A stretch of DNA of 64,000 nt. It comes from Ascidiella aspersa. Lineage: Eukaryota. The notes below the pieces were generated by a model that saw nothing but the letters and a program-made list of their open reading frames with translations, was not told the DNA's origin and did not search any database. Of this stretch, positions 12,739 to 31,574 are shown one piece after another. Made by a program: the position numbers and the translations under genes. The stretch's first letter is position 1. Each line of letters opens with the position of its first letter. The stretch covers positions 13,578,001-13,642,000 of the forward strand of contig OZ004613.1 of NCBI GenBank assembly GCA_963924565.1, in the 5' to 3' direction.

Positions 12739-15700
12739 TCAAGCTACATTACAGATCCGAGCATAGTTTACCTCTGTTTCCTCGGAAAAAGATCCGAACT
12801 CGGACTTTGCCCACGGCTGCTCTTCACCGGAGGCGAAGAGGAGAAAAACGAAAGCTCCCAAGAGTGAGACAGCGGCCGACACCCAAAATGCGATTTGCCA
12901 GGAAGCAATGGAATTCTGGGTGGAAAAGTCGTTTGTGGTATATTCCAATATTGCCTATGTTGAACCTATTTAACTTGAACTTCGCAGTTTATTCGAGCAA
13001 GCAGTTAACTAACGCGGATGTCAAATCGAAAGTGTATTGATACTTGAAGAGTGATGTTCGATTTTGCTTTAATTTATTGAGAAACGCTACATATTCCATT
13101 GCGATACCTACAGCAATGTTATCATCCAGCAACCTCCATAAAATACATGAAATCCAAAGTCGACAATTAAAGCAGGCTTAATACCACAAAGTTTTTTTTA
13201 AGATTTCTACTTATTTAAACACTGCCCGTTTTTTAACAACACAAGAGCTAAATAAACCCTAAAGACTGATCAGAACATCTGAGGCAACTTTATTTGGAAA
13301 CTGTAGTTATAAACAGGGCTGGGAGCCGGAGCCGGAGCTGGAGCCCGGAGCTAAGCATTTTTTCTGGAGCCAGAGCCGGAGCCGGAGCCATTGTTATTAT
13401 TTTTGTGGAGCTGGGTCGGAGCCGGAGCCATTTTTATTATTATTTTTTTTTGGAGCTGGAGCGGGAGCCATTTTTATTATTTTTGTGGAGCTGGAGCCGG
13501 AGCCGGAGCCCTTTTTATTATTTTTGTGGAGCTGGAGCCATTTTTCAATTTGTGGTGCTAAAGCTAAGAAATTATATTTTGTTCCATCTCCAACGTTAGT
13601 TAGCCAAAAGGAATTTTTAAAACTTGCCATTGAATAAGTGACTGGTGGCACAGGAGCTGGACCCGGAGCCAAAGGATATGAGTTTTACTATTCCGGAGCT
13701 GGAGCCGGAGACAAAGGATTGAGTTTTAAGACTCCGGAGCTGGAGCCGGAGCCATTTAATAATTGCCTGATGGCTCCGGAGTTGGAGCCGGAGCTAATGC
13801 TATTTTACGGTGGCTTCCCAGCCTTGGTTATAAAACAGCCATATTATCTGTTCATTTTTATCATAACCCAAACTTTGTGGTTTGAAGTTGCAACCCTTTC
13901 TTACTATAGCCTATGTTGAAGCATAGGCTACTCGCAAAAAAGAAAGTGTCTTAACATACACGCCAAGCATAAATATAAATATACCCCGCTGAGCAGAATC
14001 CATCCGATCACTTGGGGTGCCAGGAAGCCGGGAATGCAGCCGATCGCGTTCCCGATGCCAAAAAGAATCCCTGCGTACCTCGGTGCGATGTCCACTGTGT
14101 TAGACACGCACCCAGGGGCTGAAAAGGCAACATGAAACAGCTTATACAGAATGGCGAAAAAACCCAACAAGTATAAAGCAACACTCGGTTAAACAAGTAT
14201 AAATTTTAACTTAGAAAATAAACTTTAAGGGTGGTAACTGTGAGAAATTTTGTATATTCTCGACAGCCGCCGAAGATGTAATTGTTACGAAACACTTCTT
14301 ACGATGTGGTTAGGATAGGCTAATCTCGCTAAAGCAATATGACTAAATTACCACTCAACGTTAAGTGAATAATAAACGTTAAGTAAACAAATTTACTTAC
14401 GATTAAAATATGCATGCATTTAACATATGCATNNNNNNNNNNNNNNNNNNNNNNNNNNNNNNNNNNNNNNNNNNNNNNNNNNNNNNNNNNNNNNNNNNNN
14501 NNNNNNNNNNNNNNNNNNNNNNNNNNNNNNNNNNNNNNNNNNNNNNNNNNNNNNNNNNNNNNNNNNNNNNNNNNNNNNNNNNNNNNNNNNNNNNNNNNNN
14601 NNNNNNNNNNNNNNNNNNNNNNNNNNNNNNNNNNNNNNNNNNNNNNNNNNNNNNNNNNNNNNNNNNNNNNNNNNNNNNNNNNNNNNNNNNNNNNNNNNNN
14701 NNNNNNNNNNNNNNNNNNNNNNNNNNNNNNNNNNNNNNNNNNNNNNNNNNNNNNNNNNNNNNNNNNNNNNNNNNNNNNNNNNNNNNNNNNNNNNNNNNNN
14801 NNNNNNNNNNNNNNNNNNNNNNNNNNNNNNNNNNNNNNNNNNNNNNNNNNNNNNNNNCATGCTTAAATACAAATTTATATACTCGTCGTACTTGAAAGTG
14901 CGTTAAATCCGACGGAAACACAGAGAAAGGCGATGGCCGAAGTTGCATCACAGCCCACATAGCCGGCCAGGACCACGAAAAGGGCGCTAACTGTCAGCGA
15001 AGTGGTCTGGTTTGCCTTGCGCAGGTTGCCAAGTGACACCAGGCCGCTAGCCATGATCTTGTCGGTCAGGTAGCCGGCGCCGATCATAAGCATCCATTTG
15101 AGAAGGTAGGGCAGCGCGGATAGGAAGCCGCTCTGCAGAAAATGAAAGACACTTTTTATTAGACAACGTAGAACATTTTTCGACCAAAAGATGCTTATTT
15201 TATATATTAAGAGGGGCGGGGGAAGTCTGATAAAAATCCCAGAAAAGTTTTGCGCAAGCCTCAAAAAAGTTTGACGTTATTTTTAGCTTGCCACACTTTT
15301 TAAAGAGTAAAACAGGGTTTAAATTAAAGCAAAGGTCGTGCGCTACGTCCCTCTAAATTGGCCCACAAGAATCTCTTGTATGAAGCATTAGGCTACATGT
15401 CACCAGACCTTCCATAAGGTATCTGGGAGGTTGCCTTAATTAAATTCACCTTTCGACAATGTGAAACAAAAGCTTGTAATAGTGTCTGGGTCAGTTATTC
15501 TAGGTTACGGCTCCAGTTTTAATTAAATCACTTACGGTGGATCTAATTTTAATTTAGCCAACTTGTTTTTCTGTTAAACAGCCAAGTCGGTGACACAGCA
15601 AATAATGCAACGCTCCAGTACAATAAACATAAAATAAACTTTTTATGCCAATACAAAAAAGTAATAAAGGGCCGGTACAATCTACCGAGTGCGACCAAAC

Positions 15701-20603: not shown

Positions 20604-20850
20604 GTCACAGGCGTTGCGGGCGTTACACGCATTGCGGGCGTTACAGGCGTTACGGGCGTTGCGGGCGTTGCGGGCGTTGCGGGCGTTGCGGGCGTTGCGG
20701 GCGTTACAGGCGTTGCGGGCGTTACACGCATTGCGGGCGTTACAGGCGTTGCGGGCGTTACAGGCGTTGCTGGAGTTCAGGCGTTACGGGTGTCACAGGC
20801 GTTGCGGGCGTTACAGGCGTTGCGGGAGTTGCAGGCGTTGCGGTTACTGT
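20604..20850. repeat. 9-bp GC-rich minisatellite (GCGGGCGTT / ACAGGCGTT)
   Basis: About 27 tandem units ending about 20 nt from the SLC17 splice acceptor at 20586. Confidence 0.95.
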
Positions 20851-28940: not shown

Positions 28941-29536
28941 ATCCGTCAGAAATTAGTGCAGTTCTAAGCAAAAGATATACGACAGTTAGGCCAGCCGAAG
29001 GTTAAAAAAGTCCGACTTTTAGACTTTGAGGTTTTGGCAATGCACTAATTTTACTTAACAAATGTGCATAAGAATATTAAGTTTAATAATACTTGACCCA
29101 CCCAAACTCTAACCAGCACCCTAAGCCAAACAATGTGCGTTAATTTAAAAATTACCTAAAAGCTTCAGGTACCTCTATTTGTGACGTAACAATCCTTGAT
29201 ACAATGGACGAGAAACTATCTTATGCCCACTCGATGCTTGGGCTTTCTTTTCAAGCGTTCAAATAATTGTTAAATTAACGCACATAATATGGTTTGCGAT
29301 TCGGGTTAGCGTTTGGGTTCAGGTGGGTCAAGTGGTATTAATTCTATATCGCTTTTTTGTTATATTTTGTAAATTTGCAGCGAATATTTTCAATTTATTT
29401 AAGCCGGGAGTTTACCTAAAGGTCCAAATTAGTACATTGCCACGACCTCAAGATCGAAAAGTCAGACATTTCTGCCTTTGAATGCCCTTATTGTCGTAGA
29501 CCTTTTTTCTTAAAAAGGCACTAATTTCTAACGAAT
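28941..29536. mobile_element. Palindromic MITE with long imperfect inverted arms
   Basis: ATCCGTCAGAAATTAGTGC...GCACTAATTTCTAACGAAT; the arms also pair internally (GGCAATGCACTAATTT / AAATTAGTACATTGCC; ACTTGACCCACC / GGTGGGTCAAGT). Confidence 0.75.
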
Positions 29537-29564: not shown

Positions 29565-31574
29565 TTAATTTTCCAACTCTATATCGTCGAGGTCGACGTC
29601 ATACTTGGACTCGTCGTTATCAGCATTTAACTCATTAGCAAGTTCTTCCAAGGCGTCGTCAACTTGTTCAGCTAAATGTTTTACAAAAGGAAAGTTTGAG
29701 TTTAAATCCAACATGGTAAATTTAACGGTTATCTGGCATTATCACACAACGTTTATGTGTAGTCATCTTTCTTTAACAGTATTAAGCAGAATTTTTACAG
29801 GCTGCAAGGATTACTTTATATGGGGCGATATTTTAAATTTAATCGACATATTAAAATGTGCAAACATGAATGTCAGGTTGTTAAAGAACGTCAGAAGTTG
29901 AGTTTAAGCATGAGTTTTTCTAACTGTATAACTTTAAAAGTTGCATTTCCAAAATCAAATGTAAAACAAAACAATAAAATAGCTATGAGTTACACTATTA
30001 AACAGAGAATAGTCTTAAGCTATATTGACAGTACCTTTCAACTCTGAGGAACCAAACCTACGACGTCGAGGGGTGCGACGTCTCCGTCGACGTCTGTATG
30101 CGTCGTCCCCAACTATGAGGCAAACCACCAAAATGAGAAGCAAAATTTTGTTCATGTTTAACTCTCTACTTAAACTCTATAGTTGAGCATAATTTGTATA
30201 CTGTGTTGGGTTTGGTATTGAAAAGACTCCGACTAACGCTATTTCATTAAACAGTTGGAAAGTAAATCAAGAAATTGGTCTATAGTTGAATATTTTTTTT
30301 ACTTAACATCATTTAGCGCGTTATGGTGTACAACGTATGTAAACTTTACTCGTGGTTGTTAAAATGCAACCTCTTTTTATCGAAAATAAGCAAGTGGGTA
30401 AATAAACACTAAGCCTATTTAGATCCTGTCATCTGTAGTACTATTTCCAGCTGTTCTAGTTTGTTGTAATTGCTTTGATAAACCTTTTTAGCCTCACTGT
30501 CCTCATTCAACTCTTTTGTTTTCGAACTCCTAAATATGTCATTCTTGTAGGCTAGATATTTGCAGGTCTGACACAACACATGAGGAGCAAAAACTCTTGT
30601 CTAAAGTTGTGAGGTAGACTTGCACACATAGTTTTTTTAATAATACTTGGTCTTTCGTCAGCCTATATTTCCTTTTATATTATTGTTGAAATGTTTTACA
30701 GTTATTACATTAGTCTTGCAGTGCGACGTAATAATATTTCAGTTTTGTTCAAATTCTTCCTACTGTATACGTTGAAAACGGTCAAAAGAATCGCGGAAAT
30801 GTCAATCTTCTCTCTTATTGTACAGGAAAATTTCACGGTTGGCGCACAAGGATTGGCAGCAGCTAACATTAACTGCAAAACTTCCGACAACCTCACTAGC
30901 TCGTTGATTATACGATGGCTAACAGATTCGGCCACTCTTACTTACAATTTTGGCGTATTAATTAGTTAATGTACAACTAAACTTTTTAACTGCTTGGATC
31001 ATTTCGTCACATGTTTTGTTTCTAAGGGACAATTTGGAGATATTTTAACCGTGTACCATGAAACTAAAACGGTAATTTTACAATATGTTGTTTTTTCACA
31101 AACAACGAGGCAATAGGTTTGTTTGTATGTTATAAAAAGATAAATATTTCGCTATAAAGCATCATCAGTATCTTAATTCGATTTAAATTTTATAACATAC
31201 ATACAAACTGATTTTCGGTTTACTAAGTTCTGTACTTAGTTTAATCTTTATCATTGATGTGCAACCAGAATCGTTTGTTTTCACCATTCGGATTCAGGCA
31301 GATTTTGTTATTCGAAAGAATACTTTGATTAATAACTGTAATAACTTAAATTCATGGTGAAAAAAAGAATTGCAGAAAATAATTGCTTGCCGTTTACGAT
31401 TAACTATGACAACAGTCATGTTTCTTAGTATTTATATATGTGCACAATAAAATCGGAGGTAACGACATAAAAGAACAAACAAAATCAAATTTACCGATAA
31501 AGCAAATAAATAAACGTACTGGCTGTACAAATGGACAACACTGCAAAAGCAATAACTTTCGACCGGCCAATCAT
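29565..31574 (-). CDS. Small secreted precursor, 79 aa: signal peptide + Arg-rich cationic peptide + acidic C-terminal propiece (putative antimicrobial peptide)
   Basis: Exons 31574-31520, 30112-30035, 29671-29565 (GT-AG, both introns phase 1) give MIGRSKVIAFAVLSICTAIGDDAYRRRRRRRTPRRRRFGSSELKAEQVDDALEELANELNADNDESKYDVDLDDIELEN*. Exons 2-3 are well supported; exon 1 is the best phase-compatible candidate found by eye. Confidence 0.75.

Follow-up and report, generated by a model that had tools for sequence, protein, structure and literature searches.

What is encoded by the long run of arginine codons in a 64,000-nucleotide stretch of the Ascidiella aspersa genome (contig OZ004613.1, positions 13,578,001 to 13,642,000), and what might such a product do? 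A sequence-only reading of this stretch, referred to here as the window, had proposed a hidden three-exon gene for a secreted poly-arginine peptide with an acidic propiece, and saw in it a candidate new host-defence or cell-penetrating peptide. According to the present analysis, the locus very probably harbours a real gene, with a two-exon structure on the minus strand and coding for a precursor of 75 amino acids (Table 1), hereafter the window gene. The best overall reading is that of a secreted precursor whose acidic tail would mask an oligo-arginine head until processing, the freed head then acting as a host-defence-type effector; we give this reading a probability of about 0.55.

The predicted gene and its family in the same genome

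Exon 1 (30155 to 30035) corresponds to a stop-free minus-strand frame, from 30155 to 30036, encoding MNKILLLILVVCLIVGDDAYRRRRRRRTPRRRRFGSSELK, and exon 2 extends from 29671 to 29565. The start codon at 30155 has an A at position -3, with an in-frame stop seven codons upstream. A donor, GTACTG (30034-30029), directly follows the G at 30035, and after the acceptor AG (29673-29672) the sequence CT-GAA completes a split Ala codon, the frame then staying open down to the stop codon. From this arrangement, we infer that the two exons are spliced together. The frames from 30112 to 30035 and from 29671 to 29565 had been read correctly in the earlier proposal, as had the 11 Arg among the 13 residues between Y and F, and the Gly after the core, followed by 40 residues including 16 Asp/Glu.

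The product of exon 1 matches paralogs on other chromosomes, the closest two being L002 (C4:3.61 Mb) and L003 (C6:21.66 Mb), which share with the window gene an MNK signal peptide, an Arg run and a homologous acidic second exon. In both paralogs, exon 1 ends with ...SQMR (...SELK in the window gene) at the same phase-1 donor, with a split Ala codon and the donor sequence GTAAGG, and in the three genes the donor follows the terminal basic residue. DNA similarity to L002 begins 5 nt before the ATG at 30155, and protein similarity to the paralogs begins at this ATG. Since the similarity to paralogs starts there, and since the upstream exon of the earlier model is without relatives, the two-exon, 75-residue model is preferred. 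Furthermore, an octamer, GTTTAAGT, is located 13 to 20 nt upstream of the ATG in the three genes (20 nt in L002 and L003), and it may be a trans-splice or 5′ untranslated region acceptor.

The predicted signal peptide comprises an n-region (MNK), a 12-residue hydrophobic core (ILLLILVVCLIV) and a c-region (GDDA) ending in A, as assessed heuristically, and it aligns with the MNK... signal peptides of the paralogs. Cleavage after DDA, already proposed in the sequence-only reading, fits a family-wide pattern in which ...D-x-D-A is followed by W or Y and the Arg run, and cleavage before W in the family signals obeys the -3/-1 rule (e.g. V-D-A/W, T-D-A/W). Judging from these features, the product is likely to be secreted. 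A hydrophobic segment followed by positive charges could leave the C-terminus in the cytosol. Such a reversed signal-anchor was considered and rejected, the hydrophobic core being only 12 residues long, the small-x-small motif conserved, and the head also preceding disulfide-rich TSP1 domains. Because the same head is found before extracellular TSP1 and lipase domains, the hydrophobic start is taken to act as a secretion signal and not as a reversed anchor.

With regard to the cationic core, the Arg codons succeed one another in the order AGA CGT CGA CGG AGA CGT CGC CGA CGT CGT AGG; all six Arg codons are used, and the core is therefore not a simple repeat, as had been stated earlier. Eleven of its 15 residues are Arg, and with an internal Pro and no hydrophobic face it does not qualify as a linear amphipathic alpha-helix. 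A protamine or sperm nuclear basic protein was rejected as well, given the signal peptide before the Arg run, the acidic tail after it and the presence of the same head on extracellular TSP1 domains.

When the 64 kb were scanned for 15-residue windows with at least eight Arg, the hits were the window gene, its own antisense frame and two unrelated stretches, which leaves the window gene as the sole open reading frame of its kind. The plus-strand antisense frame of the Arg run (30025-30186; …RRRGVRRLRRRLYASS…) is also Arg-rich because CGN codons read alike on both strands. Considered as a gene, it was rejected as a by-product, with neither a signal peptide nor paralog support.

A profile built from eight exon-1 products gave 90 matches in the genome, many of them in tandem arrays (C7:11.22-11.33 Mb, C1:27.81-27.85 Mb, C2:11.30-11.33 Mb, C3:2.0-2.36 Mb, C1:8.9-9.05 Mb, and others). 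The window exon scores E = 3.1e-15 in this family profile but was among the sequences used to build it, so that the independent evidence for family membership is the matching build of the paralogs. About 35 distinct loci were inspected, and they present, in this order, a signal peptide with MNKLxxFALLFAVLLLADVDA as its typical sequence, one aromatic residue (W, Y or F), a run of 4 to 13 Arg and a variable cationic stretch, the latter often ending in x-F-G at a GG/GTAAGA or GG/GTGAGT donor. At many of these loci, an acidic reading frame lies downstream in the phase set by the donor, the exon-2 calls being heuristic and unreliable at some loci. As judged by sequence, the window gene is a member of this large, tandemly expanded family, defined by an 'MNK...DA' signal followed by an aromatic residue and an Arg run. 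A search for paralogs in the same genome, suggested along with the original proposal, was thus successful with the exon-1 product; the tail exon, searched in the same way, matched only itself, and the homologous tails of L002 and L003 were found by inspection downstream of their first exons.

Two arrays illustrate the diversity of the family. The array at C7:11222764-11329889 (L010, L013-L015, L019-L021, L024, L026, L033) contains about nine tandem genes, composed of a signal, W-[GS]-R9-13, a two-Cys cationic peptide ending in ...RAFG, a GG/GTGAGT donor, and acidic exons downstream. About 14 genes at C1:8899924-9055007 (L041-L043) and C4:27718645 (L058) read MNKFLLLALLLGILLL...GDA, then FYY-R6-GWIFG-RRR-YYG-DAVKDDDE.... 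The latter group may be the counterpart of the Ciona protein H2XX75 (P0023), whose ...RRRYYGDA(E/V)K boundary matches.

Table 1. Features of the window gene and its surroundings (window positions)
Feature	Position	Strand	Basis
Start codon and predicted signal peptide MNKILLLILVVCLIVGDDA, 19 aa	30099..30155	-	n/h/c layout read in sequence; predicted cleavage after DDA
Cationic core Y-R7-T-P-R4-F, 15 aa, +11	30054..30098	-	Translation; mixed Arg codons; same position in about 35 paralogous loci
Gly (30053-30051), linker SSELK and G (30035), first base of the split Ala codon	30035..30053	-	End of exon 1, phase 1
Predicted intron, 363 nt, GT...AG	29672..30034	-	Sequence; position and phase common to L002 and L003
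Exon 2: acidic tail (A)EQVDDALEELANELNADNDESKYDVDLDDIELEN and stop TAA (29567-29565)	29565..29671	-	Translation; homology to the L002 tail
AATAAA, candidate polyadenylation signal, 165 nt 3′ of the stop	29394..29399	-	Sequence motif only
GTTTAAG/T motif, 13 nt 5′ of the ATG	30168..30175	-	Octamer also in L002 and L003
Exon 1 of the sequence-only reading (MIGRSKVIAFAVLSICTA)	31520..31574	-	Translatable; unsupported as part of the gene

In other respects, a multi-exon collagen gene with Gly-X-Y exons lies just upstream on the minus strand (47460 to 36296) and is separate from the peptide gene. Another stretch, a plus-strand triplet repeat of GVT/GVA type (20637-20842), scores 28.6 bits against the Pfam Collagen family (cut-off 27.2); it has the appearance of a simple repeat and not of a collagen exon. 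A run of 425 N (14433-14857) corresponds to an assembly gap or a masked stretch.

Similar proteins in other animals

A HMMER profile search among 1.84 billion representative proteins returned 28 matches at E <= 1e-3 (best, 4e-10), all displaying a signal that ends with ...D-x-D-A or similar, followed by W and an Arg run; the profile itself rewards such a signal-plus-polyArg composition. In Ciona intestinalis, the 62-residue P0023 (H2XX75) reads W-R4-C-R3-YY-G-D... before its acidic tail, and P0005 (XP_002129013.3) and P0014 (LOC100184112) carry a longer cationic head, also followed by an acidic tail. A polyArg head with an acidic tail is likewise found in P0012 (KAL9989221.1) from the coral Oculina patagonica and in P0018 (XP_013381668.1) from the brachiopod Lingula anatina. 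The layout made of a signal, W, 7 to 10 Arg, often a Gly, and an acidic tail is thus present in uncharacterised proteins of Ciona, coral and brachiopod. Together with the paralogs, these proteins lend support to the build first proposed for the window gene, namely, a signal, a very cationic peptide, a Gly and an acidic extension.

The head is also joined to other kinds of proteins: a TSP1 protein annotated as 'papilin-like' in C. intestinalis (P0022/P0038), a Cys-rich peptide in the sea anemone Actinostola (P0008) and a class-3 lipase in the sponge Sycon ciliatum (P0003). In A. aspersa itself, the locus L061 (497-631 and 1173-1508; C5:28794496-28795507) combines an exon for a signal and W-R8 (MNARLLCVLLFLICLAHFGNA, then WRRRRRRRR...) with a TSP1 exon about 540 nt later (Pfam PF19028, E = 2.8e-16). 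This polyArg head on a TSP1 protein parallels that of the Ciona 'papilin-like' XP_002127480.1.

The coral and brachiopod proteins share ...SDAWRRRRRRRRNGK and are 57% identical over 42 residues. Oculina possesses at least five tandem copies, and other coral-like contigs code for W-R8-10-(N/S)-G-K with a conserved tail. Across P0012 and P0040-P0052 (Oculina patagonica and coral-like contigs), the precursors read signal-...SDA, then W-R8-10-(N/S)-G-K, with an acidic tail ending in EEYDIHPKHAI. The G-K site of the coral sequences predicts an amidated W-oligo-arginine peptide. When compared with the coral/brachiopod protein, the window exon shows 36% identity over 42 residues (E = 0.004 for the pair), and when it is aligned directly with the Ciona proteins, the similarity is marginal. 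Judging from these alignments, the proteins of the different phyla may share an ancestor.

No Pfam family matched the peptide precursors, and look-ups of exon 1 and P0012 in the ESM Atlas gave sub-threshold noise only. A literature search, including the Ciona and Lingula accessions, returned nothing specific on a function for the matched Ciona, coral and Lingula peptide precursors. Digitiferin, a coral antimicrobial peptide, was examined and set aside as an unrelated ShK-domain peptide.

Charge balance, proposed function and alternatives

The acidic tail of the window gene shares 40% identity with that of L002 (E = 5e-6), and the alignment of the three tails (window gene, L002 and L003) contains 12 invariant columns. 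A helix over tail residues 2-18 is predicted by AlphaFold2 from these aligned tails with modest confidence (mean predicted local distance difference test score of 71.5), and it fits the 'anionic helical region' described for Ciona precursors (PMC7387483). Counted per exon, the head of the window gene carries +11 and its tail -14, the corresponding values for L002 being +7 and -7. Among the precursors with nothing but an Arg run as head (Ciona P0023, four coral proteins, Lingula and P0015), heads range from +7 to +11 and tails from -7 to -15, for a net charge of 0 to -4. In nine Arg-run-only proteins, the charges of head and tail co-vary (rho = 0.96), a descriptive figure since the sample includes several close relatives and is not independent. 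Precursors with long cationic heads stay net positive.

Such a balance can be understood if the tail serves to mask the head. The precursor would enter the endoplasmic reticulum, where the signal peptide would be removed after DDA. Within the same molecule, the acidic tail would neutralise the poly-Arg head, keeping it harmless and soluble during transport and storage. The tail would later be cut off, with two possible sites: the Gly, which would leave ...RRRRF-amide, and the position after the last Lys of exon 1. Outside the cell, the freed oligo-arginine could then bind to polyanions (microbial envelopes, nucleic acids or sulfated matrix, for instance), and would act as a host-defence-type effector rather than as a classical pore-forming amphipathic helix. 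Taken separately, a defence-type function of the window peptide is a tentative proposal, to which we give somewhat less than an even chance. The entry into cells and the binding of nucleic acids or ribosomes envisaged in the sequence-only reading would be further, hypothetical properties.

The processing site is uncertain. The core is followed by Gly and then SSELK-A-EQVDD in the window gene; many other paralogs have x-G-D/E at the exon junction, a wider-family pattern that implies amidation, and the nearest paralogs, L002 and L003, have no Gly and share the terminal basic residue. The C-terminal RF-amide suggested in the sequence-only reading consequently stands on divided evidence: R-F-G is present and the wider family offers x-G followed by D/E, or FGRK, but neither an acidic nor a basic residue comes after the Gly of the window gene.

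Comparison of L002 with L003, which are 88% identical over 1.85 kb, provides a view of how the parts of the precursor change. The cationic part contains 7 mismatches in 40 bases and a 6-nt indel, compared with 47 mismatches in 778 bases of intron (Fisher p = 0.012). With 3 mismatches in 101 bases, the rate of the tail exon is not significantly lower than that of the intron (p = 0.26). A fast-changing mature part alongside conserved prepro parts is the usual signature of defence-peptide and toxin families.

Several points weigh against the proposal of a masked defence effector. With regard to the gene itself, its donor, GTACTG, is less strong than the GTAAGG found in both paralogs. In the protein collection searched, no protein shares words with the open tail frame, its product and close orthologs being absent there, a result that is silent on the reality of the gene. 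The similarity between phyla covers a short, compositionally biased stretch, the nearest paralogs lack the Gly, and the head-tail charge correlation becomes weak when all database relatives are considered (rho = 0.2). The raised rate of change in the cationic part could stem from the mutation rate of CpG-rich Arg codons, so selection is not its sole possible cause. Concerning activity, seawater salt screens purely electrostatic binding, and a secreted Arg run, as a potential furin-type substrate, may not survive intact. Finally, in a published screen of Ciona peptides, the Arg-run-dominated KH.L63.9 (F-R8-His-rich-R9-W), KH.S1007.2 and KH.C1.365 were inactive or weakly active on E. coli (PMC7387483), which weakens the host-defence role claimed at the outset.

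Among the alternatives, the one that survives best, although unlikely, is that of a regulatory, hormone- or neuropeptide-like amidated peptide, the RF-amide or, in corals and Lingula, W-R8-(N/S)-amide signalling through a receptor instead of acting in defence. The coral and Lingula precursors carry a classical amidation and basic-cleavage signal (W-R8-10-(N/S)-G-K(K)), the tail is conserved between coral species, the paralogs L006/L011 and L023 read ...RRRFGRK, and the window gene contains R-F-G. However, its Gly is followed by SSELK with no basic site, the nearest paralogs have no Gly at all, and the large size, tandem arrangement and fast-changing mature part of the family are more in keeping with defence or toxin families than with ligand-receptor pairs; moreover, amidation is common in antimicrobial peptides too. 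As an RFamide-type neuropeptide precursor in the strict sense, with R-F-G and a basic site, usually in several copies, the window gene was rejected, having a single R-F-G followed by SSELK.

In an improbable alternative, the Arg run would serve as an N-terminal handling tag instead of being the product itself, whether as a multi-site furin-type cleavage or propeptide element, a convertase-modulating element or a means of retention in matrix or mucus; what functions would in that case be the acidic peptide, unless the role of the gene were to modulate processing enzymes. Furin cleaves at R-x-K/R-R runs, and oligo-arginines are known to inhibit it. In line with such a role, a signal-W-R7-10 head is found on cargoes unrelated to one another (TSP1 repeats, a class-3 lipase, His-rich and Cys-rich peptides), and the tail exon is the best-conserved part, both between L002 and L003 and among corals. 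On the other hand, the difference in conservation between tail and intron lacks significance, as indicated above. Furthermore, the window gene, L002 and L003 consist of almost nothing but an Arg run and a tail, which makes a cargo-free tag odd, and the matching of head and tail charges suggests that the tail serves the head.

A three-exon gene, as originally proposed, is very unlikely. In this model, the upstream exon (31574 to 31520) would give the signal peptide and be spliced to 30112. The pieces are in frame, and the arithmetic of the exons is right (55 + 78 + 107 nt, corresponding to 79 codons and a stop); a GT lies at 31519, a pyrimidine-rich AG at 30113, and the upstream piece is hydrophobic. 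However, the acceptor at 30113/30112 falls inside an open and conserved signal-peptide coding sequence with its own ATG, the paralogs start at the homologous ATG, and the upstream exon, made redundant by the ATG at 30155, has no relative but itself in the window or in the 308.6-Mb genome. The signal peptide put forward with that exon gives way to MNKILLLILVVCLIVGDDA, and the idea of one module per exon has to be abandoned, the signal and the cationic core sharing a single exon.

The weakest alternative, a silent or decaying stray copy of the family without a product, would agree with the solitary location outside the tandem arrays, the weaker donor and the absence of the protein from the database searched, and is highly improbable in view of two intact, correctly phased exons with start, stop and AATAAA, of a tail that keeps 12 invariant positions with the paralogs, and of CGN-rich codons that would decay quickly without selection.

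Returning to the secreted precursor with its masking tail, the general kind of precursor is already known, as are polyArg-type members in Ciona. The peptide had been called new, which was overstated, since it is one among the many members of its family, and since Ciona members with this build are present both in databases and in a published screen. A literature search found no paper on genome-encoded, secreted, near-pure oligo-arginine peptides with a charge-matched acidic tail, and no account of a family-wide aromatic cap or of its recurrence across phyla. We can propose, as a speculative and rather unlikely extension, that marine animals (sponge, cnidarians, brachiopod, tunicates) have long possessed a secretory module that can be reused, namely, an aromatic-capped oligo-arginine directly behind a signal peptide. 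In the minimal version, of which the window gene would be one case, this module would be released, often amidated, as a natural oligo-arginine peptide; elsewhere, it would have been exon-shuffled onto TSP1, lipase, His-rich and Cys-rich cargoes and would guide these to polyanionic targets (e.g. microbes or mucus). If so, nature used 'R8-type' peptides with acidic safety tails long before laboratory cell-penetrating peptides. If the peptide is made and released, it would offer a natural test case for the safe production and storage of sticky, potentially toxic polycations, a new candidate effector class at the animal-microbe interface of sessile marine animals, and an N-terminal module that recurs and can be tested directly for its role on TSP1 and lipase cargoes. 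If the Arg run proved to be nothing more than a tag for processing or retention, invertebrate secretomes would have to be read with a new rule in mind.

Comparison with known systems

The closest known counterparts come from Ciona, which was screened for small secreted cationic peptides (LCAMP) by Ohtsuka and Inagaki in 2020 (PMC7387483). Most candidates of this screen are precursors of less than 110 residues composed of a signal, a cationic region and an anionic helix, and one group has the conserved signal MNKSALLxLLxxGLxVLxExxxA (PMC7387483). The boundary within these precursors has no basic processing sites, and the ascidian peptides are apparently cut N-terminal of acidic residues, like styelins and clavanins (PMC7387483). 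Precursors of the same build are expressed in haemocytes, where reverse transcription PCR of KH.C7.94 and KH.C1.640 showed that lipopolysaccharide induced the latter and not the former (PMC7387483). With regard to activity on E. coli and S. aureus, the Arg-rich KH.C7.94 (+11) has a minimal inhibitory concentration of 6.25 uM, and KH.C1.640, likewise Arg-rich, one below 3.125 uM (PMC7387483).

The window gene resembles these precursors in its succession of a signal, a cationic part and a predicted anionic helical part, in its MNK-type signal, and in its Arg run, some of the KH peptides also having aromatic flanks, as in KH.L63.9 (F-R8...R9-W). Besides, the Ciona database proteins P0005, P0014 and P0023 match the family profile of the window gene. 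The likeness to tunicate cationic-peptide precursors such as Ci-MAM, Ci-PAP, clavanins and styelins, noted in the sequence-only reading, is in keeping with the Ciona build and with a cut N-terminal of D (PMC7387483). Unlike the Ciona peptides, the window peptide is essentially made of Arg only, with no amphipathic helix and almost no hydrophobic residues; in this comparison, the KH precursors are taken from their published descriptions.

Clavanin and styelin precursors, by description, present the same succession of a signal, a cationic peptide, a Gly and an acidic C-terminal extension, and their type of cut, N-terminal of D or DD, would suit the many paralogs whose cationic exon ends with x-G followed by D/E. 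Their mature peptides are His/Phe- or Lys-rich amphipathic helices, whereas the window core is an oligo-arginine in which the Gly is followed by SSELK.

Outside tunicates, Oculina KAL9989221.1 and its copies, as well as Lingula XP_013381668.1, share with the window gene the layout made of a signal (...DSDA in these proteins), an aromatic-capped Arg run (W-R8-10), a Gly and an acidic tail, with a net charge near zero. The MNK start is also common to the Oculina proteins and the window gene, and the Oculina genes are arranged in tandem. They differ from the window gene by a canonical G-K(K) site, by W in place of Y, and by tails that are unrelated in sequence.

Oligo-arginines are known mainly as synthetic or virus-derived cell-penetrating peptides (R8/R9, the basic region of human immunodeficiency virus Tat) and as nuclear protamines, and aromatic caps improve their uptake. 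The window peptide is comparable to them in its at least seven consecutive Arg, in the strong polyanion binding expected of such a run, and in its aromatic caps. In contrast to these laboratory peptides, or to nuclear proteins devoid of a signal, it would be a genome-encoded oligo-arginine with a secretion signal in front and a neutralising acidic tail as its partner.

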